Shown here piece by piece: positions 1 to 64,000 of a stretch of 64,000 nucleotides of DNA. The DNA lies in the sequence record NC_027364.1; one strand, given 5' to 3'. Position 1 is the first letter of the stretch. Every line of letters starts with the position of its first letter. The notes below the pieces were generated by a model that was not told the origin of the DNA, searched no databases, and saw only the letters and a program-made list of their open reading frames with translations. The translations under genes and the position numbers were made by a program.

Positions 1-390
1 CAATGCAACAATTGGTGGTACACTAGGTGTAACTGGAAGGCAACTGTACGGTTTCGTACTACGAATTACTAGGTGACGGTATCTGCAACTTCTGGTACAT
101 TTAGTACTACAATAGATGTAACTGGTGCAGCAACCTTTGGTAATAATGTTAACATTACTGGTACATTAACGCCAGGTGCATTGGATTTATCTAGTACTGA
201 TGTAGTTGCAAACAGTCTTTCTGTTGCAACCACACTACATTCAGATGGTAATGCAACAATTGGTGGTACATTAGGTGTAACTGGTGCAGCAACTGCTCCA
301 TCAATCACTCTTAATGGTGAAGGAACTGCATTAGCAGTTACTAACAATGCAACAATTGGTGGTACATTAGGTGTAACTGGTGCAGCAACT
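1..390 (+). repeat. Three near-identical copies of a 36-45 bp coding repeat (aatgcaacaattggtggtac[a/c][c/t]taggtgtaactgg)
   Basis: Copies at about 1-36, 250-294 and 345-390. Confidence 0.8.
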
Positions 391-1620
391 TTAGGTTCAC
401 TAACAACTTCTGGTGCAGTGAAAACTGGTTCTAATGTTATTATTGGTACTAAGATCGGTGAACAACCAGAAACAGTTCAGATTTTCCCTAACACTTACAT
501 TGCTGGTTCCTTGCGTGTAGATGGTGGTATCAACGCTGATATTGATGTTAGTGGTCAAACAATCGAACCTTATGCAGTTGTTGCGGCTGACACTATTAGT
601 GCAGCGGGTAATATTACTTCTGGTGCAGAGTTGATTTCTAAATCAGCAACTATTGGTGATGTTGGTTCACAAAACAACAACTTAACAATCAATGGTAACG
701 TAGTTAACAACGGTAACTTTACAGTAACTGGTGTTCTAAACGCAACACTAAACCAAGCAAACTCTGATGTAGCTGTTAAATCATTAACTGCAACCAACAG
801 TGTTGCTGCTGGTACTAGCATTACCGCAGGTACAAGTATTACTGCAACTGGTCTGCTAAAAGGGAACACCCTTGAAGTAACTACTACTGGTTCATTTGGT
901 GGTGCAGTAACAATGTCAAGTGGTGCTAACATTACTGGAACCGTTGGGATTACTTCTGGTAACCTAACTGTTGGTGGTGATATTTCTGCAACAGGTACTG
1001 CAACCCTAGCAGCAACTTCAGTAACTACTATTACTACTTCTGGTGCAGCAACACTTGCTAGTGCATCTGTTACTGGAGCAGCAACAATCGGTGGTACTTT
1101 AACTGTTACTGGATTAATGACTGCAAATGGTAGTGTTGTTTTAGGTGACGCGGCTGCTGATACATTAACTGTCAATGCAACATCTTCTTTCAAAGAAAAT
1201 GCAGTATTTGATAAAGATGTAACTGTAACTGGTCAATTAACAACTACTAATGCTGACTTGACTACTACAACAGTAACTACTAAAAAATATGATGTTATTC
1301 CTAATCAAGTAACTTCTTCTGTTATTGCACCAACTGGCACTTGGACCCCAGACGGTACTAGCAACGTATACTTTATCACTCTAGATCAAGATACAACTCT
1401 AGCACCAATCACTGGTCTAATCGGTGGTGGTAAAGCATCTTCAGTATACATTTATGTAAAACAAGATGCAACAGGTAATAGAAACTTTACTACTGATGGT
1501 ACTTATGCGGTTGTTGATGGAACTCTAAACAAAACTGCAAACTCTGTAACTATCTACCAAGTCATTTATGACGGGGTGAGTCCAGTAACAGATATGTTTA
1601 TTGCACAACGTACTGCTTAA
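73..1620 (+). CDS. Tail fibre-like protein (5' part lies before the window; reading frame disturbed at about 37-72)
   Basis: G/T/A/V-rich beta-repeat shaft. NATIGGTLGVTGAAT occurs twice in the ORF and NATIGGTLGVTG once at 2-37 in another frame. C-terminal YVKQDATGNR domain is typical of fibre tips. Confidence 0.7.
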   Translation: MTVSATSGTFSTTIDVTGAATFGNNVNITGTLTPGALDLSSTDVVANSLSVATTLHSDGNATIGGTLGVTGAATAPSITLNGEGTALAVTNNATIGGTLGVTGAATLGSLTTSGAVKTGSNVIIGTKIGEQPETVQIFPNTYIAGSLRVDGGINADIDVSGQTIEPYAVVAADTISAAGNITSGAELISKSATIGDVGSQNNNLTINGNVVNNGNFTVTGVLNATLNQANSDVAVKSLTATNSVAAGTSITAGTSITATGLLKGNTLEVTTTGSFGGAVTMSSGANITGTVGITSGNLTVGGDISATGTATLAATSVTTITTSGAATLASASVTGAATIGGTLTVTGLMTANGSVVLGDAAADTLTVNATSSFKENAVFDKDVTVTGQLTTTNADLTTTTVTTKKYDVIPNQVTSSVIAPTGTWTPDGTSNVYFITLDQDTTLAPITGLIGGGKASSVYIYVKQDATGNRNFTTDGTYAVVDGTLNKTANSVTIYQVIYDGVSPVTDMFIAQRTA

Positions 1621-1684
1621 TAATTATAATAATAAAGGTGTCACTCATTTTGGGTGACACCATCATAACAAGTGAGGTAGTTAT

Positions 1685-2464
1685 ATGTTCACATATGTGA
1701 AAGGAAATTCAAAAGAAAATTATGAATTGGGAAGTATTATTTCCAATCCAATTGGTGTAAAAGGACTTAAAGAACGTCCAGGTGCAACACCAGAAGATCC
1801 ACAAACCTATCGTTATCTTTATAGTGATATTAGAACTCTTTATGGTATTTCAAGTAAAGATGGTTCCCCAGTAGAACCTAATGATGCTGTTAGAAAAGAA
1901 GAAGGTTTTTGGTGGTTAGTGTATAAAAATCTTGGAAATGTTAATGCTATTGAACAACCGTTGGAGTTTATTAAATTAAAAGATGAAAATCAACCTATTG
2001 TTGAATTTTTAGAAGACGCTACCGAAGAATATAAAGCACTAACTGTTCTTAAAACATATCATTATATTGATATGCCAATAGCAGATGTTAAAGCTGATTT
2101 AAAAGCAAGAACTATATCAGAACGTACAAATCGTATGAATTCTGGTTATATGTTCAATGGTCATCGTTACAGTACTGATATGTCTGGTCGTCAAATGCTT
2201 CTTAATTATTATACACAAGTTACTTCAGGCTCTGAAAGTGTTTCTATTTTTCTTGATGACGCAATTGTAAAATTATCTGCTGCTGAAATGACTCAACTAT
2301 ATACTGAAGCATTTGCAATGATTGAACAATTGTTTTCGGAATGTGACAAACAGTGTGCTGCAATTGATGCAGTTGATGATTTAGATCCTGATGCAATTTA
2401 TAAAGCACAACAAGCTGCAATTTGGGTATATGAAGGTATTGATATTCCTGAACGTATACGTTAA
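1685..2464 (+). CDS. Fibre-associated protein with DUF4376-like C-terminal domain
   Basis: C-terminal GYMFNGHRYSTD..GRQML motif and helical tail resemble DUF4376 tail assembly proteins; lies between fibre genes. Confidence 0.5.
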   Translation: MFTYVKGNSKENYELGSIISNPIGVKGLKERPGATPEDPQTYRYLYSDIRTLYGISSKDGSPVEPNDAVRKEEGFWWLVYKNLGNVNAIEQPLEFIKLKDENQPIVEFLEDATEEYKALTVLKTYHYIDMPIADVKADLKARTISERTNRMNSGYMFNGHRYSTDMSGRQMLLNYYTQVTSGSESVSIFLDDAIVKLSAAEMTQLYTEAFAMIEQLFSECDKQCAAIDAVDDLDPDAIYKAQQAAIWVYEGIDIPERIR

Positions 2465-2470
2465 TTAATA

Positions 2471-2500
2471 AAGGTCAACTATTGTTGACCTTTTTTGTTT
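2471..2500 (+). terminator. Rho-independent terminator
   Basis: aaggtcaac/gttgacctt stem followed by a T tract. Confidence 0.7.
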
Positions 2501-2518
2501 CATTATAAGGAAAAATAT

Positions 2519-3886
2519 ATGTATAATATAAGAACAGATATTATTGTAAATGGTGATATTAGTTATGACGGAGAACTAATAGGCAAGATACCAGTGCCTG
2601 ATATTAGTACTAAAAATAAAAATATTTTAATTCATGAAAGTGATGGTTTATATGTTCCAGATAACACTATTATCTATCAAGGTGGAACTGGTATATCAAT
2701 ATCCTCTAATTTAATATCCACAAAAATAAGTTCAACACAAGGAAATATTCTTAGTAATGATTCTAATGGTTTATATGTACCTGATAATACAGTAACATAT
2801 ACAGGTAGTGACAGTATTAAAATAGATAATAATATTATATCATCAAAAATAAGCACATCTTTAGGAAATATCCTTACAACTGATAGTACTGGTCTATTCG
2901 TACCGGATAATTCGATAACTTACAATGCTGGTACTGGCATTACTATTAGTGATGATGTAATAAGTGTGAAGGTTGACCCGACATCAGAAAACATACTATC
3001 TTCTACAAGTAATGGTTTATTTGTGCCTGATAATTCAGTATCTTATAGTGCTGGTTCCGGTGTTTCTATCAGTGGTGAAGTAATCAGTACTAAAATTAGT
3101 TCTACTTCTGGTAATATACTATCTACTGACAGTACTGGATTATTTGTACCTAATACAAGAATAAATTACGTTGGTGGTACTGGTATATCTATTAGTTCAG
3201 AAACAATTTCAACTAAAATAAGCACAACTCCAGGAAATACGTTAACAACTGACGTAAATGGGTTGTATGTTCCAACTGGACCATCCTCATATACTGCGGG
3301 AAATGGTATATCTATTGACGCTAATGTAATTTCATCTAAAATCAGTAATACCTCTGGTAATATATTAACATCAGATAGTACTGGATTATTTGTTAATGGT
3401 AATAATACTACTAACCTAATTCGTAGAAAAAGAGAATTATATTATTCAAACTTAAATATACAATTCACTGATGGAATTGAACAAAATTTAATTCAAATAC
3501 TTAAATCATTCACACCCACTAGTGGAACACTAGATAGTTTCTTCAATACAACAAGTAATAAGTTAAATGTTTATAATTTCAATTCCTCTCTAAATTTCAA
3601 ATTAAATATATACGGCACATGGACTACTAGTTCGTCTAATATGAGTTTTGCTATTAATTTTACAAATACTCAATTTAATAATATTAATCAAGTTAGAACA
3701 CCAACTATCACGGTTGATACTATTTCATTTAATACATTTTTAAGTGTTGATGAAAATGGTAACCTAGTAACTAATGGAACACCTATTACGTTAATGTCAC
3801 ATGGTGGTAAGTTTACAGTAACTAATTTATTATTAATTGCTGAACAAATCGTTCCACCTTCAATGAGTGGAGTTTCTGTAGTTTAA
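2519..3886 (+). CDS. Fibre protein: six 41-aa repeats plus Sf6/HK620 tail-needle-type knob domain
   Basis: ATG at 2519 follows an AAGGA SD. The C-terminal RRKRELYYS...FFNTTSNKLNVYN...LIAEQ region matches my recollection of the Sf6 gp9 knob along its length. Confidence 0.75.
   Translation: MYNIRTDIIVNGDISYDGELIGKIPVPDISTKNKNILIHESDGLYVPDNTIIYQGGTGISISSNLISTKISSTQGNILSNDSNGLYVPDNTVTYTGSDSIKIDNNIISSKISTSLGNILTTDSTGLFVPDNSITYNAGTGITISDDVISVKVDPTSENILSSTSNGLFVPDNSVSYSAGSGVSISGEVISTKISSTSGNILSTDSTGLFVPNTRINYVGGTGISISSETISTKISTTPGNTLTTDVNGLYVPTGPSSYTAGNGISIDANVISSKISNTSGNILTSDSTGLFVNGNNTTNLIRRKRELYYSNLNIQFTDGIEQNLIQILKSFTPTSGTLDSFFNTTSNKLNVYNFNSSLNFKLNIYGTWTTSSSNMSFAINFTNTQFNNINQVRTPTITVDTISFNTFLSVDENGNLVTNGTPITLMSHGGKFTVTNLLLIAEQIVPPSMSGVSVV
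2666..3403 (+). repeat. Six tandem 123-bp (41-aa) coding repeats
   Basis: Consensus xxxYxxGxGIxIxxxxISxKISxxxGNILxxDSxGL(F/Y)VPxN is visible in the translation. Confidence 0.85.
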
Positions 3887-3895
3887 TAACATATT

Positions 3896-3926
3896 AAGGT
3901 CAAGTCTATGCTTGGCCTTTTCTTTT
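3896..3926 (+). terminator. Rho-independent terminator
   Basis: aaggtcaag/cttggcctt stem (one G.U pair) plus T tract. Confidence 0.6.
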
Positions 3927-3973
3927 AACTAAAATAAATACATCATATAAATCTATTCTGAGGAAATATTTAA

Positions 3974-5938
3974 ATGAGTATAAATCGAATTAGAGGTGAT
4001 GGTGGTGTAATTATCGATAGTAAATCTTTTTTAGAGTTACCGAAAGCACCATCAAAAGAAACCGCTGATGTAATAAGATCAGGGATGATTAGATACAATA
4101 AGGAATGGAAATCGTTTGAAGGTGTTCTGGATTTTGAAGATGGTACTATGGCATATCGCCGTTTTGCAAACTTAGATGCAAATGGTAAACTTCTTACTTC
4201 CCAATTACCAGATTCAGTAACTAGTGGTTTACAATTTGTTGGTACATATAATCCTATTCCAGATGATATTGATCCACCTTTAGCACAAACTCCACTACCA
4301 GCACCAGCAGCATCACTAAATGGTGATTATTATGTTGTTCGTGGTATTATGGATGCCGCACAAGCCCATTATGAAGCAAATAATCCACAAACAAGTCCTG
4401 TTACATTTACTCCTACAAATCCAACTGGACAAGGTAATTGGATTGAAATTTTATATTATGTTGACTCTAATCCAAATATATCTGGTGCTAAACTAGTAAC
4501 ATACGCTTTCGCTAGAATTATTCCTGCATCTATTCCGAGTACTGGTCATGATGGTCTTAAAAATTTAGCAACAGATGCTGACTTAACCAAACCATTTGCT
4601 TCAGGTGTTCCAATGAACCAAACCGCACTATCAGATGGTGATTGGATTATTATAACTGAAGATAAAAACATACGTCTACGCCAGTCAAGAACAAGCATTT
4701 CCGCTGCTTCAGTATTATATGACAATACTGTAATGATTGCAAATCATCGTCAATTTAGGACAAACGCAGGGACCGTTCAAACATCCATAGATAACGTTGT
4801 GATTGAGTGTTTACGTAGAACTGGTGATTCCATGTATAATGATGGAACAGACGGCTCTGGGCGTTTTGGGGTGGTGTATGGAAGTGCAGCAGCACCAGCA
4901 TTGACATTTAACAATAATCCGTTTGACCCAACGAATAACCCAGGTAATGACCCAACTAAGTGGTCAGATGCTAATACTGGTATATTTCATCCAGCCGATG
5001 ACGCAATTGGGTTCAGTACTGCTGGTACAGAACGTGTTCGAATTAATAATTCAACACTAACATTATATCAATCAACATCAACACCTGCATCAACGCCAGT
5101 ACTAAGATTTGATAATGCAACTAATACTAATGTGGGATTAAGTGCTAGTAGTAATATTATTTCATTTAGTTCAATGAATAAAGTTCAAGTTGAATTTAAA
5201 AATGGCGAAAGTGCGTTTCATGGTAATATTGTTGTTGATGGTACAAGTACATTAACTGGGGATACATCAGCTAGTAATATAACTGCTAGTGGTAATTTGA
5301 ACATTCAAGGTAATACCACATTAGGTGATGCTGCATCAGATACCATTACAGTTAATGGTGTTAGTACTTTTACAGCTAATACTAATTTTAATGGAACAAC
5401 TAATAAATTTAAAAATATAAATCTATTAGCTAATGGTATAATTACATTAGAAAGTGCTACTAATCAAAGTACAATCCAATTAGTTAGTTCTGATTTAAAA
5501 CTATCAATGGGTAATTATGCTGATGTAAGTATCTATGATAATGGAACTATAAGAACACGTTTTAATAGATATGGTATCCAATTACCTGTACTAGCTACTA
5601 TTGATAACTCTGTTGGCGTTGATGGTATGATTGCATACTCCAATACCGAGCGTACTTCAATGCAAAAAGTTCAAGGTCAATGGGTTCCAATTGGTTCAGG
5701 TTCAGTGAGAACCGATGCTTTTACCATTTCATCTTGGGTCTTAAGTGGTAACTACTACACCCTTACTGTAACAGCCTCAAACATCGTCACAGCAGAGATA
5801 CAGGAACAGGTTAGTCCTGGTGTCTATACTCGTGTTGAGGTCGATAGCGTGACGTTTAACGGCACTAACGTAGTGTTCAGTATACCTTCAACACCTGATG
5901 TACGTTTCGACGGAAGAACATTGGTAACAATTAGATAA
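3974..5938 (+). CDS. Virion structural / fibre-like protein
   Basis: Lies in the fibre cluster and shares the LGDAAxDTxTVN shaft motif with the first ORF; ATAAATA late-promoter-like motif upstream. Confidence 0.55.
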   Translation: MSINRIRGDGGVIIDSKSFLELPKAPSKETADVIRSGMIRYNKEWKSFEGVLDFEDGTMAYRRFANLDANGKLLTSQLPDSVTSGLQFVGTYNPIPDDIDPPLAQTPLPAPAASLNGDYYVVRGIMDAAQAHYEANNPQTSPVTFTPTNPTGQGNWIEILYYVDSNPNISGAKLVTYAFARIIPASIPSTGHDGLKNLATDADLTKPFASGVPMNQTALSDGDWIIITEDKNIRLRQSRTSISAASVLYDNTVMIANHRQFRTNAGTVQTSIDNVVIECLRRTGDSMYNDGTDGSGRFGVVYGSAAAPALTFNNNPFDPTNNPGNDPTKWSDANTGIFHPADDAIGFSTAGTERVRINNSTLTLYQSTSTPASTPVLRFDNATNTNVGLSASSNIISFSSMNKVQVEFKNGESAFHGNIVVDGTSTLTGDTSASNITASGNLNIQGNTTLGDAASDTITVNGVSTFTANTNFNGTTNKFKNINLLANGIITLESATNQSTIQLVSSDLKLSMGNYADVSIYDNGTIRTRFNRYGIQLPVLATIDNSVGVDGMIAYSNTERTSMQKVQGQWVPIGSGSVRTDAFTISSWVLSGNYYTLTVTASNIVTAEIQEQVSPGVYTRVEVDSVTFNGTNVVFSIPSTPDVRFDGRTLVTIR

Positions 5939-5974
5939 TAAAAAAGGGAGAACATCAGTTCTCCCTTTTCTTTT
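5939..5974. terminator. Bidirectional terminator between convergent genes
   Basis: aaagggagaac/gttctcccttt stem with A and T tracts on both sides. Confidence 0.85.
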
Positions 5975-6902
5975 ATACAGCCATCGGTGCTTTAATTGTT
6001 GGCATTGGATTGTAATTCACTAATTTGAAAGAATCCATTGTGAAATCTTCAATATTAGTAATTGTAGGATCAAGCCATAATTCAGGTAATTCACGAGGTT
6101 TTCTCTGTAGTTGTTCTTTTACTTGTTCAACGTGGTTTTTATAAATGTGGCAATCACCACCATTCCAAATAAATTCACCAACATCTAAACCCGTAATTTG
6201 TGCAATCATATGAGTTAGTAGTGAATAACTACTGATATTAAATGGAACTCCCAAAAATAGATCAGCGGATCTTTGATGTAGAATGCAGCTTAGTTTCCCT
6301 TGTACTACACAAAATTGTACAAAGCTATGACAAGGTGGCAACGTCATATCATCAAGCTCACCAACGTTCCATGCACTTAGAATATGGCGACGACCATATG
6401 GATCGGAATTTATACCATTGATTAGTTCCTGTAATTGGTCAGTTGTACGTTTCATAACAACACCATGTGAACCAGTATAATCGATAACTTTGTATCCTTT
6501 ATCTTTTAATTCTTGAATTTCTTCAGTACTGGAACTAAATTTATAATCTTCCCATTCACGCCATTGCTTACCATACACTGGACCTAACTCACCATCAGTA
6601 TAACCAAGAGCAACGCCTTGATTTAGGTAATTATCTGTCCAAATAGTTTTCTTTTCTGTATCACGAGTTCCATGCAAAATTTCACAAAGGCGACGCTCAT
6701 CATGGGAACCTTCAATAAACCATAGTAATTCTGAAGTCATTGCTTTCCAAGCTAGACGTTTTGTCGTCACTGCTGGGAAACCATCTTTAAGGTCAAAACG
6801 CATTTGTTGACCGATAAGTTTGATTGTTCCAACACCAGTACGGTCAACGCTTTCTACGCCTTCATCTAGAATTTTTTGATATAGTTCTTGTAGTTGTTTC
6901 AT
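5973..6902 (-). CDS. thyA: Thymidylate synthase
   Basis: DRTGVGT, ELLWFIEG, GPVYGKQWR, LPPCH catalytic Cys, QRSADLFLGVPFN, DCHIY. Confidence 0.97.
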   Translation of the reverse strand: MKQLQELYQKILDEGVESVDRTGVGTIKLIGQQMRFDLKDGFPAVTTKRLAWKAMTSELLWFIEGSHDERRLCEILHGTRDTEKKTIWTDNYLNQGVALGYTDGELGPVYGKQWREWEDYKFSSSTEEIQELKDKGYKVIDYTGSHGVVMKRTTDQLQELINGINSDPYGRRHILSAWNVGELDDMTLPPCHSFVQFCVVQGKLSCILHQRSADLFLGVPFNISSYSLLTHMIAQITGLDVGEFIWNGGDCHIYKNHVEQVKEQLQRKPRELPELWLDPTITNIEDFTMDSFKLVNYNPMPTIKAPMAV

Positions 6903-7498: not shown

Positions 7499-8155
7499 TT
7501 ATTTTGCTTTACGTTCTGCAAATAGTTGTTTTACTTTCTCAATAGCTTTAGTCTGTGAAATACCTTCTGGAATTTCTAGATAAATTGTTTTACTATCTTT
7601 CGGTTGTTCAACAACTTGTGTTTGCGGACGCAAGCTTGGCTCTAAATTGTATGCACGTTCATAATGTTCTTTAGCCAGTTTTTCATATTTTTGTGCATCA
7701 GTGAGAAGTTGTTCTACAATAGTAGCTTCTTCTACTTTAGTGTCTGCTTCTTGTGGATTGAATGGGTTAAAGTCTTTTACTTTACCATCTTCTTGTACTT
7801 TCGCTTGATTTTCATCTAATGCTTTGTTTAGAACATCAAGAGAAATTTTATTATTACCACCAGTGTGCATATCAATATCACAAGTACGAACGCGACGTAG
7901 ATGCTGCATGTTGTGTAGAACATCTAGCATTTTGCGTCCATCGAGATAACCAATTTTATGCATTACTTCCCACAAATCAATATTAGATTGACCATGACCC
8001 ATAACAATATCAGTTACTGCGTGTACATATGCTTCTGGTAGTGAATCACGATAAACGATAAGGCAGTGTTCAGGATCATCTGGTAGTGAACGCCAAACAA
8101 CAAAAACACGAGAACCTGTATTACGCATTACACCAACATGACGAATAGCTGCCAT
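7499..8155 (-). CDS. Hypothetical protein
   Basis: 218-aa ORF packed tightly with its neighbours. Confidence 0.75.
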   Translation of the reverse strand: MAAIRHVGVMRNTGSRVFVVWRSLPDDPEHCLIVYRDSLPEAYVHAVTDIVMGHGQSNIDLWEVMHKIGYLDGRKMLDVLHNMQHLRRVRTCDIDMHTGGNNKISLDVLNKALDENQAKVQEDGKVKDFNPFNPQEADTKVEEATIVEQLLTDAQKYEKLAKEHYERAYNLEPSLRPQTQVVEQPKDSKTIYLEIPEGISQTKAIEKVKQLFAERKAK

Positions 8156-8157
8156 AA

Positions 8158-8418
8158 TTATTCTCCTTTATCTTCTTGAGTTTCACTATCTTGTGATTCA
8201 GCTTCTTCTTTAGCTGCATCTTCTTGTGCTTTAATATCTTCAAGAGCTACATTTGCAAAAGAAACAAATTTAGATACAACTGGAGCAACCTCAACAAGTT
8301 CTTCAACTTTAAAGGTGTTTCGTGCAACAGCAGCTTCCATGATTTTTGCAGCATTGATTAGGTCTAGAAGGGTTAGTTGAATTTGATTATTTTCTTGTTC
8401 CATTTTAATACTCTCCAT
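8158..8418 (-). CDS. Hypothetical acidic protein
   Basis: 86-aa ORF downstream of a promoter. Confidence 0.7.
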   Translation of the reverse strand: MESIKMEQENNQIQLTLLDLINAAKIMEAAVARNTFKVEELVEVAPVVSKFVSFANVALEDIKAQEDAAKEEAESQDSETQEDKGE

Positions 8419-8437
8419 GTATATTGGTACATTAACT

Positions 8438-8466
8438 ATTATATCATATTTTTATAAGTTGTCCCA
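8438..8466 (-). promoter_or_regulatory. TGGGAC-N17-TATAAT promoter
   Basis: Minus strand TGGGAC aacttataaaaatatga TATAAT. Confidence 0.7.
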
Positions 8467-8471
8467 CTTAT

Positions 8472-8500
8472 AAAAGAAGAGAACGGAATTTTCCGTTCTC
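8472..8500 (-). terminator. Terminator after the VWA gene
   Basis: gagaacgg/ccgttctc stem plus T-rich tail on the minus strand. Confidence 0.65.
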
Positions 8501-8512
8501 ATTATTTAGTAC

Positions 8513-54111: not shown

Positions 54112-54134
54112 AAAAAAGCACCCAACGGGTGCTT
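54112..54134 (-). terminator. Terminator after nrdG
   Basis: aagcaccc/gggtgctt plus T tract. Confidence 0.75.
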
Positions 54135-54137
54135 ATG

Positions 54138-54912: not shown

Positions 54913-54920
54913 AATTTACC

Positions 54921-56726: not shown

Positions 56727-56864
56727 TTTACATTCCTTGTATTTTGAAATCATCTGGGGGTGAAGATATTTAATATCACCAGACAACATTATAGCGTCAG
56801 AACAGGTTATTTCTCTTGACCTATATCAAGGAAAAGTGACATTGCTTTTAATTTGCACAAATAG

Positions 56865-56887
56865 AAAAAGCACCACTAGGGTGCTTT
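56865..56887 (-). terminator. Rho-independent terminator
   Basis: aaagcacc/ggtgcttt plus T tract. Confidence 0.65.
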
Positions 56888-57002
56888 AAAGTACTGCTAA
56901 TATAACAACTGCCCAAATTAACAGTAATACATTGGTTGGTGCGGAAAAAAGCATATATGCAGCAATTGCACTACAACCTATGACAAGTTTAGCTAGTCTC
57001 AT
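56886..57002 (-). CDS. Small hydrophobic protein (38 aa, not in the ORF track)
   Basis: MRLAKLVIGCSAIAAYMLFSAPTNVLLLIWAVVILAVL*. Confidence 0.5.
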   Translation of the reverse strand: MRLAKLVIGCSAIAAYMLFSAPTNVLLLIWAVVILAVL

Positions 57003-57174
57003 CTGGACTCCATGTAATAGTCACTGTGAACGTCCCTTCCTGAAAACCAAACTCATCTTGTGGGATTTGTTCAGCTAATGGGTTAAATCTTGAATCGAAG
57101 GCTTCATGTACGTCTCTTTGAATATCATAGAGACTTTCACCATCGTATTCTTTTTTGAAGATTTCATTCTGCAT
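56989..57174 (-). CDS. Conserved small phage protein
   Basis: YDGESLYDIQRDVHEAFD...IPQDEFGF..GTFTVTITW. Confidence 0.7.
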   Translation of the reverse strand: MQNEIFKKEYDGESLYDIQRDVHEAFDSRFNPLAEQIPQDEFGFQEGTFTVTITWSPDETS

Positions 57175-57574
57175 TTAAACGTAACGACCCTCGGATTGTA
57201 TCTGGATAATTATCTAATAGATCGATTAGTCTATTAAATGTATGAGTACTGATGAATGGATGTTTCTTAGCTAGTTCAATGCGTTTTTCAAAATCCATTA
57301 TTGTAATCTCGGTTCTATTGAAACTACCTTTACGTCTGTACGTTAGTAAACGCTCTTTATGTCCATCAAGCTGGAAATCAAAATATGTTGTTGCATTATA
57401 ATCACTATCATCACTGATAGGCTTTGAAAGATCCAGATTATACGTAGTTCCAATCGCAAAAAAGTATCCACCATCTTCCAATGGAATATCTTTGTCGCTT
57501 AGATTGAAATCTGTTTCATCACCTAGTATATCAAATATCTTGATACTTAGTGACATAAATTCATCAGCTAACAT
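57164..57574 (-). CDS. Hypothetical protein
   Basis: 136-aa ORF. Confidence 0.7.
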   Translation of the reverse strand: MLADEFMSLSIKIFDILGDETDFNLSDKDIPLEDGGYFFAIGTTYNLDLSKPISDDSDYNATTYFDFQLDGHKERLLTYRRKGSFNRTEITIMDFEKRIELAKKHPFISTHTFNRLIDLLDNYPDTIRGSLRLNAE

Positions 57575-57585
57575 TTCTTTTTACC

Positions 57586-57804
57586 TTATTTGATAACTCT
57601 ACAGTAGTACTGAATAATGTAAGGAAATAAAGGATTATTTACGTATGTTGCAAAATTAGCTATTGTAACTTTTTTATAGTACGAGTTGTGAATTGTTATA
57701 ATAGTGTGGGGATCTATTGATTCTCTATTAGAGAGTTCAACAAAACGTCCACACTTCATATAAGCCTTACCATAATAATCGTAAATTATCTCGTATTTTT
57801 CCAT
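57586..57804 (-). CDS. Hypothetical protein
   Basis: 72-aa ORF. Confidence 0.6.
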   Translation of the reverse strand: MEKYEIIYDYYGKAYMKCGRFVELSNRESIDPHTIITIHNSYYKKVTIANFATYVNNPLFPYIIQYYCRVIK

Positions 57805-58164
57805 TTATTCAGGATCTTTATTTTTATCAACTGTGTTGTTTTTATTCAAATCAATTTGCAAAGCCATTGCAGCTTCAGCATTTTCTTCATGTGTGCCATT
57901 GAATTTATACCCATTCTTGATGAGATTAACGGTGTAGTACTTATTATAAAGAAATGCCCAAACGATCATCGCAATAGTACCTACAATCCAAAAAGACACT
58001 GCGTTTAGGATGAAGTAAATTACAAATGCACCAATGAACGTAATAAAGTCACCACGGAACAATGCAGGGAAAGGTCCAAAAAATAATGTAGTCCAAGAAA
58101 AACCAAAGAAACCATCTTTGCGTTGTCCTACATTTTCATTTTTTAAAGAAATTGTTTTAGCCAT
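57805..58164 (-). CDS. Membrane protein (GFSWTTLFFG family)
   Basis: AGGAG SD before ATG 58164; GFSWTTLFFGPFPALFRGD, YNKYY...L...GY. Confidence 0.75.
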   Translation of the reverse strand: MAKTISLKNENVGQRKDGFFGFSWTTLFFGPFPALFRGDFITFIGAFVIYFILNAVSFWIVGTIAMIVWAFLYNKYYTVNLIKNGYKFNGTHEENAEAAMALQIDLNKNNTVDKNKDPE

Positions 58165-58174
58165 TTTTAATCTC

Positions 58175-58444
58175 CTACTTTTTATTTGGGTTTGGTATAC
58201 AGTACACAAATACTAAATGATTAAAATGTTCTGTATTCGCATACTTTGCTAAGTCGGTTATGAGGAAGTTTGTATCTTTAAATCTGCCATCATTGTATGT
58301 TGTGATTTGAAAACGTAGTTCAGGTGCAAAAATATAATAATAGAATATATCATTTACACACCCAACAGTATGCTTAGCATATCTTTCAATTTTCATGTGT
58401 GGATAATCTCTTTCACCCCATATTCTTTTATTGCTAATGAGCAA
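58175..58444 (-). CDS. Hypothetical protein (start probably MKIERY)
   Basis: ORF track. Confidence 0.55.
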   Translation of the reverse strand: MLISNKRIWGERDYPHMKIERYAKHTVGCVNDIFYYYIFAPELRFQITTYNDGRFKDTNFLITDLAKYANTEHFNHLVFVYCIPNPNKK

Positions 58445-58761
58445 ATTTCACATGGTTTAGCCGGAACAGGAATTCCATCTTTACTTATCCGTGCAATCAG
58501 TAAAGTATGAACATCAGCACGAGCAGCCAGTAAACATGAAATTTCAGCATGAAGAAACTCACCTTGCGGTCGCCCAGCACGAATGGCGAAACCCTTCTGT
58601 ACTGGGTGAGTCTGTGTATAAGAATTTGTGCGAGTTGCCAGTACTCTACCTTTTTTATCAAGTGCACGAGCAATAACACGATACCGTTTGTAATTTCCTA
58701 CTTGTTCAATAGGTGGCATCTGGCGTAATTCTTCGATTAGTTTCTCCAATTTACTATTCAT
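58393..58761 (-). CDS. Zinc-dependent cytidine/dCMP deaminase-fold protein
   Basis: LHAE ... PCEIC, N-terminal TNS...THP. Confidence 0.8.
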   Translation of the reverse strand: MNSKLEKLIEELRQMPPIEQVGNYKRYRVIARALDKKGRVLATRTNSYTQTHPVQKGFAIRAGRPQGEFLHAEISCLLAARADVHTLLIARISKDGIPVPAKPCEICSLAIKEYGVKEIIHT

Positions 58762-59384
58762 AAGTCTAAGTCTATACCCTTTTCAATAGATTTCTCTAGA
58801 ACCCAAAGTTTACATTCTTCACTCTCCAAATGTATCTTTGCCTCTTTCTGTTGTTCTATTGTACAAGACTTTATGAATTCACGCAAGGCTTCTATTGTAT
58901 TTTTTAAATTTTTTATATCATCGAAGATTTTTTCTTTGGTTTCTTCATCGATTACACATGAACTCCAACTGTGTCGTTCCTCCCAAACAGTTTTAGTGGG
59001 ATTAAAAATTGATGGAGTAGATTTGAATGCATGGATCTTATTAAATGTGTTATCTGCTTCTTGTTGGGTGTAATCACCATATGTGTTTAGCACATTTTTG
59101 TATAATTTATCAATCGCCTCTTCATACGTATCACCACCACAATCCAATTGATAATCATGTGCTTGTACCCATTCGTCGTCTTGCTCAATATACATTGGTG
59201 AAAGAAATTCTACCCAAAATTGAGTCTTTGTATTCAATGCTTTAAAATCTTCAATTCGATTTGTCATTGGACACACATCATGAGGTTCTATATCAATCCT
59301 AGCTGGAACCATGTCTTTGTTTATGAATTTAGGATGACCCAAAATCCACCAGTACTTTTCCGATGTAGTCATAGTAATCTCCAA
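58758..59384 (-). CDS. Hypothetical protein
   Basis: 208-aa ORF. Confidence 0.7.
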   Translation of the reverse strand: MEITMTTSEKYWWILGHPKFINKDMVPARIDIEPHDVCPMTNRIEDFKALNTKTQFWVEFLSPMYIEQDDEWVQAHDYQLDCGGDTYEEAIDKLYKNVLNTYGDYTQQEADNTFNKIHAFKSTPSIFNPTKTVWEERHSWSSCVIDEETKEKIFDDIKNLKNTIEALREFIKSCTIEQQKEAKIHLESEECKLWVLEKSIEKGIDLDL

Positions 59385-59417
59385 TTAAAAAGTACTGCCA
59401 TTATGACAGTACTGATA

Positions 59418-59777
59418 TTAAATGTAACGTTTCTTTTTATAATCATACCCTACTGCTTTGTAAAAGTCAAACAAAGAAGCATGTTCAAATGTAGGTAATA
59501 GGTCATATGGATGCTGATAGTTCGCAATACCAACAATAGCCAGCATTGATTCAGCAGTTCTTACGTTCTCACTATCCCATTCATCCAAACGCCACAGTGA
59601 GCAAAGTACCTCTCGTTCATGTTTCTTACCCAGAAAGAATCCAGCTTCACGGTCACGAAATGCACCTACACTGATAGTACTTTTGTACCAGTCTTTTTCA
59701 CCATATAATGGCATACGGATAATATGTTTTTCTTTAGCTTCTCCAAAGCGATGAAGAAATGCTACATAATCACTCAT
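59418..59777 (-). CDS. Hypothetical protein
   Basis: 119-aa ORF. Confidence 0.7.
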   Translation of the reverse strand: MSDYVAFLHRFGEAKEKHIIRMPLYGEKDWYKSTISVGAFRDREAGFFLGKKHEREVLCSLWRLDEWDSENVRTAESMLAIVGIANYQHPYDLLPTFEHASLFDFYKAVGYDYKKKRYI

Positions 59778-59944
59778 AATTTATAACCCATTACAGGTTT
59801 GGTATGATCCGGTTCGTAAGACTTTTCAGTACTGAACCCTCTGAAATTACCACGACCTGGATTCGGGCAAGCCATCCCTTGTACTGAATGCTTACCCTTA
59901 TCTTTGCCACAATTTTTACATTTGTAGTCAATTACTTCTTTCAT
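59774..59944 (-). CDS. Small Cys/His protein (56 aa, not in the ORF track)
   Basis: MKEVIDYKCKNCGKDKGKHSVQGMACP...; ATGA overlaps on both ends. Confidence 0.7.
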   Translation of the reverse strand: MKEVIDYKCKNCGKDKGKHSVQGMACPNPGRGNFRGFSTEKSYEPDHTKPVMGYKL

Positions 59945-60189
59945 TGTGCATCCTTCGGAACAGTATTAAGACGTTTGCGATTCACAATCTTCCTGCACAT
60001 GAGATTAAGATCTTGCCCATGACGCATAGTATGACATGCGTATAGTGTTCCTTGGTGATTTAGTTTTGTTAAACCTTGACGGATGATTTCAGCATCCATC
60101 TCATCAACTTTAGGAGCACAACCACAGAGAATAATGGATACAAATATTGTTAATGTAATGAATATATTTTTCATGATATTTTTTCTCAT
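59941..60189 (-). CDS. Putative lipoprotein
   Basis: Hydrophobic stretch ending LCGC. Confidence 0.6.
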   Translation of the reverse strand: MRKNIMKNIFITLTIFVSIILCGCAPKVDEMDAEIIRQGLTKLNHQGTLYACHTMRHGQDLNLMCRKIVNRKRLNTVPKDAQ

Positions 60190-60566
60190 TTAGTAAAACA
60201 CGAATTATTACTGATAAGTTCATCAAGTACGTTTTGTACTTCGATAGAATTAATATCAACTTTGTAATAATTATAGTTTTTAACTCTAAAATGTTCTTTT
60301 GATATATCAACTTTAAATTCAATAATATCAAGATTACCAATAAAATCAGACTTATCAGTTCTTAAATCCAAAATACCTAATTCCGGTTTTTGTGGTTTAC
60401 ATAAAATCAAACCAAATTTATTTTCTTCAAATGCCTGATTAAACATATCATAATAATCACTAATAACAAATCTAATATTATCAGTGCTTAACTTTCCTGA
60501 TTTTCCTTTTTTATAAACAGAAACAATGTTTAGTTCAAAGGTTTTACCAAAGCGTGTGATTTTCAT
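60186..60566 (-). CDS. Hypothetical protein
   Basis: 126-aa ORF. Confidence 0.7.
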   Translation of the reverse strand: MKITRFGKTFELNIVSVYKKGKSGKLSTDNIRFVISDYYDMFNQAFEENKFGLILCKPQKPELGILDLRTDKSDFIGNLDIIEFKVDISKEHFRVKNYNYYKVDINSIEVQNVLDELISNNSCFTK

Positions 60567-61534
60567 TTTGGGCTATAACCACTTTTAATTTTGGAAATTA
60601 CTTTCTTCTCGAAGAACTTACGTGCTTCTTCAATAGTTTCGAATTCTTCACCATCAGTAGTACTGGTTTTACCAATAGCACCGTACTCAATAATTACTTC
60701 ACACACTGGAGCATTCAATTCAATATTATAGAATTTGTTTGAAGAACCGTGAACATATTCCAAATGTACATTATCAGGAATGTTCTGTACATAATCATAG
60801 TTCTTGAAGATAATATCAATCATATTTTCTTCGCCGCGATCAGGAAATAGTTCAGTATTATTCAGTACTAAACGCTGTGCAGCACGGAACATATCAAAAT
60901 ATTGTTCGCCTTTTTTCAGTTCTTTTGTATCAGAACAGAAATGACCATAATATTCTACATAATCATTCCAAGGATAAATTCCTTCATCAGCAGTTTCAAA
61001 AACGTAAGTTTCATCTTGTGGAACTTTAAAACCACGAGTTTTTGGATGAGAAATTAAGCACAGTGAAATATTATGACCGATATCTGAATCATCAGTAATA
61101 CTACCACCAACCATATGAACAACATTTTTAATACGTTCAAAATCTACATCTTCAATTTCATGATACATTAAATGTTCTTCAATATTACTTACTAGTAATG
61201 AATTACCATTTCCGGCATCGAATTCAAAAATGAAAAGTTCTACACAATCTTCTTCTTTCATTTCAATAGTATCACTGAGTTTAATATACTCATTTTTTAA
61301 TTGTTCAATATTTTCATGAGAACCAAAACTATAACGTGAACTGATATAACTACTACCGTCCAACCATCCCATATCCCAAGGTTCTTCTGACATGTATTCT
61401 GAGCTATAGAAATGAGTCAAATCATCTCTCTGAGTACAAACCGTAAGAGAGCGAACATTATTAAGACCTTGAACTTCAAGATTCAGTACTGTAGTATTGC
61501 CAATTTTTTGTTCAGAAATAATTTTAGTTTTCAT
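60563..61534 (-). CDS. Protein with C-terminal WGR domain
   Basis: HLEYVHGSSNKFY.IEL....V...YGAIG......EF.T.EEA...F.K.V.SK.K.GY. Confidence 0.75.
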   Translation of the reverse strand: MKTKIISEQKIGNTTVLNLEVQGLNNVRSLTVCTQRDDLTHFYSSEYMSEEPWDMGWLDGSSYISSRYSFGSHENIEQLKNEYIKLSDTIEMKEEDCVELFIFEFDAGNGNSLLVSNIEEHLMYHEIEDVDFERIKNVVHMVGGSITDDSDIGHNISLCLISHPKTRGFKVPQDETYVFETADEGIYPWNDYVEYYGHFCSDTKELKKGEQYFDMFRAAQRLVLNNTELFPDRGEENMIDIIFKNYDYVQNIPDNVHLEYVHGSSNKFYNIELNAPVCEVIIEYGAIGKTSTTDGEEFETIEEARKFFEKKVISKIKSGYSPK

Positions 61535-61543
61535 TTAAAATAC

Positions 61544-61648
61544 CTATTGAATTGATTTACGCCATTTGGCTAGTTTAACATTCATGTAAGTAAGGAACTC
61601 ACGTTCCATCTCTTCTGAACTCATATTATCGCATTGCAAAGCGAACAT
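61544..61648 (-). CDS. 34-aa ORF duplicating the C-terminus of the upstream gene
   Basis: MFALQCDNMSSEEMEREFLT versus LFKTQYEGHSAEEVEREFIT. Confidence 0.45.
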   Translation of the reverse strand: MFALQCDNMSSEEMEREFLTYMNVKLAKWRKSIQ

Positions 61649-61665
61649 GTCAAGTGCACATCATC

Positions 61666-62313
61666 CTACTTTTTCGATTGGAACAATGCAATCTGTACGC
61701 GTGTAATGAACTCACGCTCTACTTCTTCAGCACTGTGTCCTTCATATTGTGTCTTGAAAAGTTCCATTGCTTTTAGTGCCATCTGTACAGAAATGTCTGT
61801 AATACTTTCAGTACTGGTAGTCTCAAATACATTTCTGATGGATAGTTCACCATCATCAGCATGTTCTTGTTGAACCGTGTTGTTTTGTTCATCAATGTAA
61901 CGTAAAGCTTTGTACTCTGCTTTTGTTAGATTTTCATACCAACGTGGGTGGTGGAACAAATCATGCATTGTAACTTTTGCTGCTTCCATGAGAAGTAATA
62001 GCTCTTCATTTCTGCGAATATGTTTTTCTTCACCTTTATGATTTTTGTAAGTATATGCACAACGCATAATGGCTAATCGAACTTCACCTGCTTTGGTGAT
62101 AGTGTATGAATGTATTGCATTATCATAATCACTTTCCCATTTCTGACCAGCATATTCGTACCAAAGTTCATTAGTTTCCCATTTAATGAAATCAAATTCT
62201 AACAAACTGTCAATCAACTTAGCCAAATTACCACTGTACTCACGGCTAATGATATTGAAACCACCATTGTACTTTGCAAGGTACAGAATCTTTTCTTGTG
62301 TTACATTTTTCAT
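61666..62313 (-). CDS. Hypothetical protein
   Basis: 215-aa ORF. Confidence 0.7.
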   Translation of the reverse strand: MKNVTQEKILYLAKYNGGFNIISREYSGNLAKLIDSLLEFDFIKWETNELWYEYAGQKWESDYDNAIHSYTITKAGEVRLAIMRCAYTYKNHKGEEKHIRRNEELLLLMEAAKVTMHDLFHHPRWYENLTKAEYKALRYIDEQNNTVQQEHADDGELSIRNVFETTSTESITDISVQMALKAMELFKTQYEGHSAEEVEREFITRVQIALFQSKK

Positions 62314-62651
62314 TACATGTAATCCTTGATGTATTTTAGCAGTTTAGATTTCTCTTCGGTACTTAATGATTTCTTGTTCATTAAGTGTTTCATTTCTTGA
62401 CGTTCAATTTCTTCACATCTTTTAGATTCAGCTTCAATTCGTGTATTATATTCTTCGTCAGTTTCTTCTCTGGTCCAAATTACATTGTATCCATGAAAAC
62501 CGCCGTAACCACCGTCGGGTGAAAGACTAATGGGACCGTTATATTCAGCACGATACTTATTAAGAGTGTCAATAAAGGTATCAATGCCACACGGTTCAAT
62601 TTCAATATAACCAATCACTACAGTAACGTCAATTTTGTTCATAAAGTTCAC
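62313..62651 (-). CDS. Hypothetical protein
   Basis: REETDEEY..RI motif. Confidence 0.7.
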   Translation of the reverse strand: MNFMNKIDVTVVIGYIEIEPCGIDTFIDTLNKYRAEYNGPISLSPDGGYGGFHGYNVIWTREETDEEYNTRIEAESKRCEEIERQEMKHLMNKKSLSTEEKSKLLKYIKDYM

Positions 62652-62669
62652 CTATAAAATTAGGGAGCA

Positions 62670-63227
62670 TTAGCTCCCTTTGTATTGATGTTTACGTTTA
62701 GTACTGTATTTCCAGCCAGTACTGTGTCTTGTTCTGATATCGTCCCAATACGATGGTAATGAACGCATCTTACGTCTTCCACGTATTTCAGGTTCCCCCT
62801 CATCCTTCAGTACTGCACAAGCCATACGACGCTCTTGCTGAGTCTTAGGACGCTTGTATCGGGAGTGGTTATGTTTGTACATATACGAACGCTTATGTCG
62901 CCATTCCTTATCACGAGCTTTACGTTTATGTTCCCAGTACTCATTATAGAGTATCATGTATTCACCCATAAGTAAATCAGGAGATACAAGTAATCCTTTT
63001 TCAGTACAAAGATAATAACCTACGAACTTTTCTGGATACATTTCGTAATAGAAACGGTTCTTCCAAAATGTTTCACGATTCTTTTTGTTGAATTCAGCTA
63101 AATCGAATTTCATCTTACTGTGGAAACGGTCTATACCGTCATGTTCCGCAATGTACTCTAACAGATTATCAATAATCTCAACTTTACCAGAATCGTGATA
63201 CAACGTAAATGTTTGGTCAAAAAACAT
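62670..63227 (-). CDS. Hypothetical protein with basic C-terminus
   Basis: RPKTQQERR...RGRR...LPSYWDD...WK...KRKHQYK. Confidence 0.75.
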   Translation of the reverse strand: MFFDQTFTLYHDSGKVEIIDNLLEYIAEHDGIDRFHSKMKFDLAEFNKKNRETFWKNRFYYEMYPEKFVGYYLCTEKGLLVSPDLLMGEYMILYNEYWEHKRKARDKEWRHKRSYMYKHNHSRYKRPKTQQERRMACAVLKDEGEPEIRGRRKMRSLPSYWDDIRTRHSTGWKYSTKRKHQYKGS

Positions 63228-63453
63228 ATGAAATCTCCTTTAAGTTAAAATAACCTAATGGAAAGTCATTCTTCCTTTAATACATGTTCTCATGATTTGT
63301 TCCTTTTGTCAAGATATAGATATAAAAAATCCCTGCCAAAAGACAGGGACGAAAAACTGAAATAACACATGGAGTTCTTTTTAATTTAATAAAAAGTATT
63401 ATTATTCTTATAAAAGTATTTATTAAGAACTCCACAATATGGCTTCAAATGAA

Positions 63454-63642
63454 TCAAAAACCTTTCTGAGCTACTAGTTCGCGGTACTGTGCACGAGTTA
63501 GTACACCTTGTTTGCGTAGAGCTTGTAGACCGGATAGGGTTTCACTCTTACGTTGTTCGTACATACGTTGTTCTTTAGATTGAATAACTTTCTCTTTCTT
63601 AACTTTTGCTACTGGTTCTTGTTTCTTAGGTTGTTTAGCCAT
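63454..63642 (-). CDS. Small basic protein
   Basis: 62 aa, K/R rich, GGAG SD. Confidence 0.7.
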   Translation of the reverse strand: MAKQPKKQEPVAKVKKEKVIQSKEQRMYEQRKSETLSGLQALRKQGVLTRAQYRELVAQKGF

Positions 63643-63673
63643 TTTATATCTCCTTCTGTATTATGATAACAAC

Positions 63674-63703
63674 ATTATATCATGTATGGGACATTATGTC
63701 CCA
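63674..63703 (-). promoter_or_regulatory. TGGGAC-N18-TATAAT promoter embedded in the gtatgggac/gtcccatac hairpin
   Basis: TGGGAC ataatgtcccatacatga TATAAT. Confidence 0.55.
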
Positions 63704-63710
63704 TACAATA

Positions 63711-64000
63711 TTACATATTTTCTTCAGCAAATTCTGCAAGTGGTGAACGAACAACACCTTCTAGTTCGATGACACGACAACCTGCCCAATCTTTAAACTT
63801 CTCAGTTACATATGTCAAACCACTGTTAACAGGACTAATAAACTTACTGTCAATCTGACTCAAGTTACCCATAATTACTACTTTACAGTTTAATCCTGCT
63901 CGTGTCAAGATTGTTTTGGCTTGTGCAGGTGTAATGTTTTGGAATTCATCAACTACTAGAATAGTGTTGGTGAATGAACGTCCACGTACAAAGTTTAGTG
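63711..64000 (-). CDS. phoH: PhoH-family ATPase (3' end; gene continues beyond the window)
   Basis: RGRSF.N.ILVVDEFQN.T..Q....LTRAG...K.V.MGN..QID ... RS.LA. Confidence 0.92.
   Translation of the reverse strand, partial: LNFVRGRSFTNTILVVDEFQNITPAQAKTILTRAGLNCKVVIMGNLSQIDSKFISPVNSGLTYVTEKFKDWAGCRVIELEGVVRSPLAEFAEENM

Follow-up and report, generated by a model that had tools for sequence, protein, structure and literature searches.

The hexamer palindrome AGTACT is iterated throughout the genome of Escherichia phage PBECO4, and its enrichment is genuine and goes beyond what base composition, codon usage and protein sequence account for. The window considered here, i.e. the whole stretch of 64,000 nucleotides that was analysed, is identical to bases 1-64000 of PBECO4 (KC295538 / NC_027364), a jumbo myovirus of 348,113 base pairs (bp) that belongs to the genus Asteriusvirus in the Rak2-like group; the full genome was analysed too, giving context for the window. 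The window contains 133 copies of AGTACT (2.08 per kilobase, kb), where a zero-order model expects 21.6, which corresponds to a 6.2-fold excess. In dinucleotide-preserving shuffles of the window (n=100), the word occurred 18.0 +/- 4.4 times with a maximum of 34, and none of the 100 shuffles reached 133. The whole genome holds 891 copies, 7.5-fold above the zero-order expectation, or about one per 400 bases and 2.6 sites per kb. A preceding sequence-only reading of the window had estimated a six- to eightfold enrichment, which both figures bear out. It had also listed 12 sites within positions 1-6000, all of which were recovered at exactly these coordinates, and 24 sites within 54001-63000, where the cluster is real and the count is 25. 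The sites are distributed as follows:

1-64000, no strand: the AGTACT field with its 133 sites, 126 within open reading frames (ORFs) and 7 intergenic or at ORF edges, in codon phases 67 / 21 / 38.
103-5368, no strand: the first 12 sites, starting at 103, 193, 2171, 2606, 2885, 3086, 3131, 3377, 4538, 5015, 5098 and 5363, in the four plus-strand genes gp001-gp004 at the left end of the record.
2170-62815, no strand: 33 copies of the extended form CAGTACTG, with starts for example at 2170, 3130, 5014, 6524, 7022, 10129, 12001, 12806, 14931 and, at the far end, 62717 and 62808.

Coding constraints do not explain this excess. As a control, synonymous codons were permuted inside each gene, which keeps the protein sequence, the dipeptides and the codon usage. 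After this shuffle the ORFs of the window contained 36.3 +/- 5.3 copies, compared to 127 observed (3.5-fold, z = 17), and genome-wide 222 +/- 11 copies were obtained compared to 782 observed in coding sequence (z = 50). A ratio of 3.5 is far from the value of 1 that a purely codon- or dipeptide-driven word would give. The excess was present in each codon phase, with per-phase ratios in the window of 3.1 (AGT-ACT), 4.0 (xAG-TAC-Txx) and 4.3 (xxA-GTA-CTx), which supports the earlier view that the word occurs in all phases and that Ser-Thr dipeptides are insufficient as a cause. When the order of codons was shuffled instead, the ratio was 5.1. The codon-pair tables point in the same direction: Ser-Thr dipeptides are spelled AGT-ACT in 366 of 717 cases (105 expected), and GTA-CTG encodes Val-Leu 141 times (22.5 expected), whereas the reversed codon pair ACT-AGT for Thr-Ser is depleted (33 vs 73 expected). 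Codon, dipeptide and codon-order causes were thus rejected by the shuffles together with the codon-pair tables.

The excess is also peculiar to a single palindrome. Of the 64 palindromic hexamers, AGTACT alone stands at 6.2-fold in the window, and the second-ranked reaches only 2.1-fold, so that none of the others is similarly enriched. The sequence-only reading had noted that phages usually avoid 6-bp palindromes, and AGTACT is the one strongly enriched example in a genome that otherwise purges palindromes. A maximal-order Markov model, which had been proposed as a check, gives a ratio of just 1.27 in the window, because the sub-words AGTAC and GTACT are themselves enriched and the signal is nested up to 8 bp. 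The enrichment as such therefore stands in this check as well and only its apparent size is small; as an argument against enrichment the value was rejected, given that the 5-mers are in excess too. In the window, AGTAC/GTACT are enriched 3.0-fold and CAGTAC/GTACTG 7.7-fold, and the 33 copies of CAGTACTG compare with 0.72 +/- 0.88 in the shuffles. Genome-wide, CAGTACTG occurs 191 times, which is 55-fold above zero-order.

The shape of the motif is that of a symmetric property of duplex DNA and not of codons, dipeptides or promoters. At the 133 sites of the window, C is found at position -1 in 64 and G at position +6 in 64, both being present in 33, which matches independent half-sites. With sites oriented by coding strand, the frequencies are 0.43 for C(-1) and 0.47 for G(+6), the disfavoured bases being G(-1) and C(+6). 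The preference at -1/+6 is equal in coding and non-coding sites (C 0.45 vs 0.43, G 0.08 vs 0.05) and therefore belongs to the DNA word and not to the codons. In other genera of the clade described below, the base at -1 shifts from C toward A; as G is avoided there in every lineage, the conserved core can be written as H-AGTACT-D, with CAGTACTG as the optimum form in PBECO4 and RaK2. Positions outside the 8-bp core carry at most 0.19 bit each. The one-off variants at the outer positions are in excess genome-wide (AGTACA 1.37-fold, TGTACT 1.21-fold), which results in a graded specificity of AGTACT >> AGTACA/TGTACT > TGTACA, with GGTACC and CGTACG at zero. The C-to-T neighbours AGTATT (0.82) and AATACT (0.78) are mildly depleted (z = -3.6 and -4.5). 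The non-palindromic AGTAC is strand-balanced in the genome, save for two blocks at 116.7-124.3 kb and 127-132.6 kb that are treated below.

Along the genome the excess is even. The codon-aware ratio lies between 2.8 and 4.4 in 17 of 18 20-kb bins and at 5.65 in the short terminal bin, and the observed-to-expected ratio (O/E) is 3.35 for plus-strand and 3.50 for minus-strand genes, in a genome that has 86% of its genes on one strand. Outside the early region, non-coding DNA contains 2.50 and coding DNA 2.28 sites per kb. Only about 114 of the 891 sites are non-coding, 87% lying inside genes, and along genes no positional preference was found (chi-square p = 0.41). Regular spacing or helical phasing of the sites was considered and rejected, since the spacing outside the early region is Poisson. 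The density is highest from about 132 to 157 kb of PBECO4, where it reaches 5-7 per kb. This peak aligns to the direct terminal repeat of the related phage fEgEco12, which has been mapped experimentally to 20,993 bp (PMC13070987) and contains 6.6 AGTACT per kb in that phage.

Relatives were examined with 46 loci from IMG/VR that were anchored on the tail sheath and the large terminase, the former being encoded within the window:

20149-22812, minus strand: the tail-sheath gene, anchor for fetching relatives and, with neighbouring genes, source of the sites in the ortholog conservation test.

AGTACT is the top palindrome at 5-7-fold in all 14 close-clade loci, i.e. those with a sheath identity of at least 71% or a terminase identity of at least 73%, and the clade includes Asteriusvirus (PBECO4, 121Q), RaK2 and the GAP32/BF/CBB-like phages, of which BF is a Serratia phage. 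In every locus from more distant jumbo phages, AGTACT was at 0-1.4-fold. A 20-kb locus of RaK2 retained a 3.4-fold excess after codon correction (z = 12). Other palindromes in outgroup jumbo phages (CTGCAG, CAATTG, TGGCCA and CAGCTG) initially appeared as "alternate HIPs", i.e. alternate highly iterated palindromes (HIPs), at 3-5-fold over zero-order; they were dismissed, since they drop to about 2-fold or less after codon correction. The exception is the low-count GCCGGC with 17 vs 4.8 copies (z = 5.0), which is still short of the AGTACT signal. The iteration of AGTACT is confined to phages of Enterobacterales.

Conservation in orthologues had been proposed as a check on the enrichment. In 10 relatives with about 72% sheath identity, AGTACT is retained at 23-44% of homologous positions and other hexamers at 12-15%. 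Where the amino acids are unchanged, retention rises to 55-90% vs 31-35% for other hexamers, although these samples are small, with 9-14 sites for each relative, and the relatives do not count as independent. Single AGTACT sites are preserved at synonymous positions across long divergence. Where sites are lost, the changes hit all six positions and not C to T alone. About two thirds of the PBECO4 sites are lineage-specific; the density is held while positions turn over.

The word has the opposite fate in the host. In two 50-kb pieces of E. coli K-12 (100 kb in total), AGTACT occurs 6 times vs 23 expected (O/E 0.26), or 0.06 per kb, which makes its density in PBECO4 about 43 times higher; in 35 kb of the coliphage phi92 there is no copy vs 12 expected. 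Both the host and another coliphage thus avoid AGTACT, and there must be some selection in these hosts against the word.

Phage genomes are known for the loss of short palindromes, and PBECO4 follows this rule for many of them. In the window, 28 GC-rich hexamer palindromes have no copy at all, including CTGCAG, GGTACC, GGATCC and CCATGG, and 23 are absent from the entire genome; CGATCG has none in the window and 2 in the genome. The tetramer GCGC, with 290 copies expected, is missing from all 348 kb and likewise from every clade locus. This purging of words could reflect avoidance of host restriction or self-avoidance of phage-encoded nucleases. AGTACT belongs to the same class of words, as it is a 6-bp palindrome and the ScaI/Eco255I site, and PBECO4 itself avoids the 28 other palindromes in the window and GCGC genome-wide. 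The sign is opposite, however, with AGTACT 6-7-fold up in PBECO4 and low in E. coli (0.26) and phi92 (0/12).

Two stretches outside the window, 116,608-124,301 and 126,954-132,598, are free of AGTACT beyond the Poisson background. In the first of these blocks (116,681-124,301), the coding minus strand has no ACT at all over 7,620 bp, which is unique in the genome; about 145 would be expected by the genome average and 41 after synonymous shuffling, and the share of ACT among Thr codons is 0.07 vs 0.46 elsewhere. The block spans about 20 small genes and ends in an intergenic region, and all ten of its proteins that were tested (10/10) fall in PHROGs of unknown function. It is kept in relatives that are 83-87% identical, as a 6,976-bp gap in TH47 (87% identical; positions 16158-23134 of the locus) and an 8,293-bp gap in fEgEco12 (29019-37312 of the fetched sequence). 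Within it, the nearest permitted word serves as a surrogate (CAGTACAG): AGTACA occurs 43 times vs 13.6 +/- 2.8 in all three phases, a 3.2-fold excess. This matches the fold excess of AGTACT elsewhere, so that the pressure for an AGTACT-like word is still at work in DNA from which the perfect palindrome is barred. The ACU-free sense strand may most simply be understood as immunity of the transcript to an ACU-cutting ribonuclease. The second block, whose start coincides exactly with the inner end of the direct terminal repeat, has its counterpart in fEgEco12 at 20857-26616 and consists of tandem genes of about 70 codons. Its pattern is the mirror image of the first, with TGTACT on the coding strand (13 copies) and AGTAC reduced to 2 vs 28 expected. 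A replication origin between the two motif-free blocks was considered and rejected, as neither iterons nor a skew switch were found. The genome also carries six tRNA genes (7837-12112, minus strand, in genome piece L005), for Thr(UGU), Asn(GUU), Met(CAU), Ser(GCU), Ser(UGA) and Gly(UCC); the Ser(GCU) tRNA reads AGU, a codon inflated by the motif, and Thr(UGU) reads ACA, the Thr codon that is used in the ACT-free block.

The sequence-only reading had offered the idea of a self-mark for a phage methyltransferase. PBECO4 has two annotated methyltransferases, gp148 and gp416. The former is a phage Dam-type enzyme (PF05869) with no link to AGTACT and was rejected as cognate enzyme. The latter (21340-22200, minus strand, in genome piece L005) is a short C5 enzyme that comes closest, by structural comparison, to the catalytic domains of eukaryotic DNMT3 enzymes, and its closest homologues outside the clade, at about 51% identity, are found in phi92-like phages. 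RaK2 DNA has been reported to have the properties of Dam-, Dcm- and CpG-methylated DNA, with methylated CpG seen after bisulfite sequencing (PMC3622015). The CpG deficit of the PBECO4 genome (rho 0.75) with its CA/TG excess (1.28 and 1.18) fits this report, and AGTACT contains neither CpG nor GATC. In view of its DNMT3-like nature, the CpG methylation of RaK2 and the phi92 homologue alongside zero AGTACT, gp416 was rejected as well, and with a Dam-type and a CpG-type enzyme as the only recognisable ones, the methylation idea has no evident enzyme behind it. In addition, the DNA of fEgEco12 is digested by ten ordinary enzymes as predicted (PMC13070987), so that the DNA is not globally hypermodified.

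Two further genes of the window deserve mention. The gene at 8513-9937 (minus strand), which is the largest in the window without AGTACT, is labelled "HNH endonuclease" in RefSeq, but its Pfam matches are to a DUF2201 metallopeptidase-like and a VWA-like domain and not to an HNH domain, and the label is probably wrong. The "starvation-inducible transcriptional regulator" at 36985-37425 (minus strand) matches DUF5856 and is a ferritin-like (Dps-like) protein; from this family assignment, a Dps-type DNA-condensing protein of the phage may be a candidate for a chromosome-associated factor.

We think that AGTACT is best explained, with a probability of roughly 0.4, as the dispersed recognition site of a putative protein of the phage clade that reads duplex DNA. 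A clade-specific homodimeric protein would read both half-sites symmetrically, and selection would keep the density high and thereby mark the phage DNA (2.6 per kb) against that of the host (about 0.06 per kb). As its most likely variant we would favour a DNA binder with an organising or protective role for the phage chromosome, because the terminal repeat, which is expected to enter first, is densest (6.6 per kb) and because 121Q has been reported to possess a phiKZ-like inner body (PMC5646251), which makes abundant DNA-associated internal proteins plausible. Alternatively, the protein could be a nuclease or nickase whose cuts provide the ends needed in recombination-dependent replication, or, as a third variant, an unrecognised modification enzyme. 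The roles of a genome-organising protein and of a recombination hotspot, both of which had been proposed from the window, would be compatible with the data.

Several points weigh against a dedicated recognition protein. A search for a cognate methyltransferase or DNA-binding protein had been proposed, but when the annotated methyltransferases and nucleases were compared, together with neighbouring genes, against Pfam, NCBIfam and PDB, this revealed nothing pointing to AGTACT and no candidate reader. There is little information past the 8-bp core, so that the motif is no longer than a restriction or modification site. Outside the early region the nearest-neighbour spacing is exponential (Poisson; coefficient of variation, CV, 1.09), with no phasing toward cooperative arrays, and the promoter-embedded, operator-like sites are confined to Asteriusvirus. 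The self-mark function itself is purely conjectural, and a selection-like conversion drive would also yield conserved sites and a uniform excess. A more far-reaching version, in which Rak2-like phages run a sequence-based self-recognition with a protein that reads H-AGTACT-D and about 900 positions recoded for it, and in which the ACU-free block and the loss of GCGC represent further word engineering, is possible though rather doubtful.

The main rival is a HIP-like drive without function, in which biased mismatch correction or gene conversion, of the kind known from very-short-patch repair, turns near-cognates into AGTACT and protects existing sites in a heavily recombining phage, a process that is also the model favoured for HIP1 of cyanobacteria (PMC4390886). 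The O/E is uniform whether genes are early, middle or late, on either strand and also in non-coding DNA, as a genome-wide mechanical process would leave it, and the highest density coincides with the highest GC content in the terminal repeat, the region in which one would expect the most recombination. The phage also encodes a C5 methyltransferase, shows a CpG deficit with TG/CA excess and has the deamination-type neighbours AGTATT and AATACT depleted. This depletion amounts to about 100 sites, however, which is small compared to the excess of about 560 sites, and sites are lost via changes at all six positions. Neither an AGTACT-specific methyltransferase nor a Vsr-like nuclease was found among the annotated methyltransferases, nucleases and neighbours, and the C5 enzyme is DNMT3-like and would fit the CpG methylation of RaK2, while AGTACT is devoid of CpG; phi92 has a homologue of this enzyme and yet totally avoids AGTACT. 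The two conserved AGTACT-free blocks carry a one-off variant at the same fold excess, something that a blind drive does not predict. Altogether we regard such a drive as unlikely, though it is the most serious of the rivals. A signal at the level of RNA is less probable still. According to this view, AGUACU (CAGUACUG) is selected in transcripts, e.g. as an endoribonuclease processing or decay site, and the palindrome is secondary; with 86% of the genes on one strand, a DNA palindrome and an RNA motif are indeed hard to separate, AGTACT pairs form the stems of terminator-like hairpins, and the conserved block of about 20 genes without sense-strand ACU points to an ACU-reading activity on RNA. 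An RNA site need not be self-complementary, however, and the flanks are mirror-symmetric on the sense strand and the same in non-coding DNA, the excess is equal for genes of either strand and intergenic DNA, and the persistence of the motif as AGUACA in the ACU-free block indicates that ACU is not the part under selection.

It is very improbable that the copies serve a host factor, either by binding or titrating an enterobacterial protein or as decoys for ScaI-type restriction. The restriction of the trait to phages of Enterobacterales and the low level of AGTACT in E. coli (0.26) and its absence from the phi92 sample do suggest that something in the hosts reads the word. To our knowledge, SlmA is alone among the DNA-binding proteins of enterobacteria in having a site with an AGTACT core. 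The site of this nucleoid-occlusion factor is GTGAGTACTCAC, with the 12-bp palindrome GTRAGYRCTYAC, in which SlmA depends on G1, T2, A4 and G5 and accepts only purines as the third base (PMC3020112). In the 348 kb of PBECO4, no full match to GTRAGYRCTYAC exists, the half-sites of the SlmA-binding-site (SBS) type number 16 vs about 50 expected, i.e. they are three-fold rarer than the composition predicts, and GAGTACTC occurs 4 times genome-wide compared to 191 for CAGTACTG. An SlmA-site reading was therefore rejected, as the required flanks are absent and even depleted, and 891 ScaI-type sites would make the genome highly vulnerable and not protected. Next to negligible is the last alternative, that AGTACT is a by-product of coding or promoters, i.e. 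of Ser-Thr content, codon or codon-pair usage, or a copied promoter or terminator module. AGT, ACT and GTA are preferred codons in PBECO4, and in the early region AGTACT occupies fixed positions in two duplicated families of sigma-70-like promoters. The excess nevertheless remains in all phases after synonymous (3.5-fold) and codon-order shuffling (5.1-fold), and ACTAGT, made of the same two codons, is depleted, so that the shuffles and codon-pair tables refute a by-product. A promoter or terminator module is at odds with the small non-coding share of the sites, with their even spread along genes and with CBB, whose promoters are without the motif though CBB-like genomes are equally enriched.

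The promoter association is real within Asteriusvirus. The equivalent of the terminal repeat in PBECO4 (about 132.5-153.4 kb) is present as a single collapsed copy in the record, has a higher GC content (0.36-0.38) and contains small early genes by the dozen, all of them preceded by a promoter from one of two stereotyped sigma-70-like families with embedded AGTACT. One family has AGTACT directly next to the -10 hexamer, the other has it overlapping the TTGCAA -35 hexamer at the upstream edge, and some promoters hold both, 20-22 bp apart; both families have clearly been multiplied by duplication. As the published RpoD-like promoters of CBB are without AGTACT (PMC5259590), the association is probably secondary. 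A role as sigma-70 promoter element or operator was accordingly rejected as a general explanation, since it is not conserved in CBB and covers few sites. AGTACT(G) pairs a few bases apart were also seen to form the stems of intrinsic-terminator-like hairpins in both PBECO4 and CBB. The sites of the window in non-coding or regulatory surroundings include the following:

38233-38430, no strand: two AGTACT (38233 and 38425) in a 735-bp stretch without annotated gene between gp056 and gp057.
56890-56895, minus strand: an intergenic AGTACT immediately upstream of a terminator-like hairpin (56887-56867) and T run, on the upstream side of the nrdD-like gene (54921-56789, minus strand).
59391-59413, minus strand: an AGTACT pair 17 bp apart whose copies base-pair into a terminator-like hairpin with a 10-bp stem and a T run behind it.

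The upstream copy of the last pair abuts a CATAAT -10-like hexamer, within a promoter-like match GTTACA-17-CATAAT with TG, and the same two-copy AGTACT stem is present in terminator Torf26 of CBB (PMC5259590, supplement).

Among known systems, the closest likeness is to HIP1, which the sequence-only reading had called an established analogy. HIP1 is hyper-abundant in cyanobacteria, occurs in all frames and in intergenic DNA and is conserved between relatives (PMC5861425, PMC4390886). AGTACT shares these descriptive hallmarks, with an excess beyond composition and codons, presence in all frames and intergenic DNA, conserved sites, restriction to a lineage and no settled function. The word "established" goes too far, since a literature search found no description of AGTACT in Rak2-like phages. 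For the HIP class, a cognate orphan methyltransferase has been described that recognises the palindrome or its core (Elhai 2015, PMC4390886), and a quasi-periodic distribution over long ranges has been described too, the periods being 10-90 kb long (Xu et al. 2018, PMC5861425). In contrast, no cognate methyltransferase is evident for AGTACT, the recognisable enzymes being Dam-type and CpG-type. Its spacing is Poisson at short range (CV 1.09), and a genome of 348 kb is too short for periods of that length to be judged. The replicon is a virus, the motif is AT-rich with 6 bp and weak flanks where HIP1 is GCGATCGC, and the excess of 7.5-fold over zero-order and 3.5-fold in codon-aware terms compares with 15-300-fold for HIP1.

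Other known words resemble AGTACT in part. Very-short-patch repair in E. coli is associated with an excess of CCWGG and a deficit of CTWGG that are linked to Dcm/Vsr, and the combination of a palindrome excess with a deficit of C-to-T neighbours (AGTATT and AATACT at about 0.8) is similar; the AGTACT excess is far larger, however, and the proteins scanned included neither a Vsr-like product nor a methyltransferase for AGTACT. The SlmA site GTGAGTACTCAC shares the identical 6-bp core, its palindromic nature, the dispersed chromosomal sites and, in the reading proposed here, a homodimeric reader, whereas the phage has hundreds of sites in 348 kb compared to a small dispersed set in the bacterial chromosome, and it lacks or even depletes the flanks that SlmA requires. 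Chi, KOPS and DNA-uptake sequences are over-represented words that mark "own" DNA and are asymmetric and strand-polarised. Like these, AGTACT is short, dispersed and over-represented, but it is palindromic and unpolarised, except for the oriented half-broken variant in the two small blocks.

Descriptively, AGTACT therefore joins the highly iterated palindromes, so far a cyanobacterial phenomenon, and differs from those in its sequence, its viral replicon and its magnitude. The Rak2-like clade has eliminated dozens of palindromes and yet maintains one at about 900 copies, for which half of the Ser-Thr dipeptides and most Val-Leu(CTG) pairs are bent to spell AGTACT, and the density of this word provides a simple diagnostic for the clade. 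A sequence-specific factor or a directional repair that acts across the chromosome is implied for therapeutically used jumbo coliphages and for Klebsiella phages, and the motif matters when these phages are to be engineered or recoded and for how sensitive they are to ScaI-type restriction. For the 30-year-old HIP question, they offer a model that is far more tractable than cyanobacteria, with 350 kb, E. coli K-12 as host and about 70 sequenced relatives, and the motif-free blocks are a natural "negative control" for palindrome function. If the doubtful notion of a sequence-based self-recognition were true, it would amount to a new way of designing a viral genome at the level of oligonucleotides, with at least two sequence-specific factors behind it.

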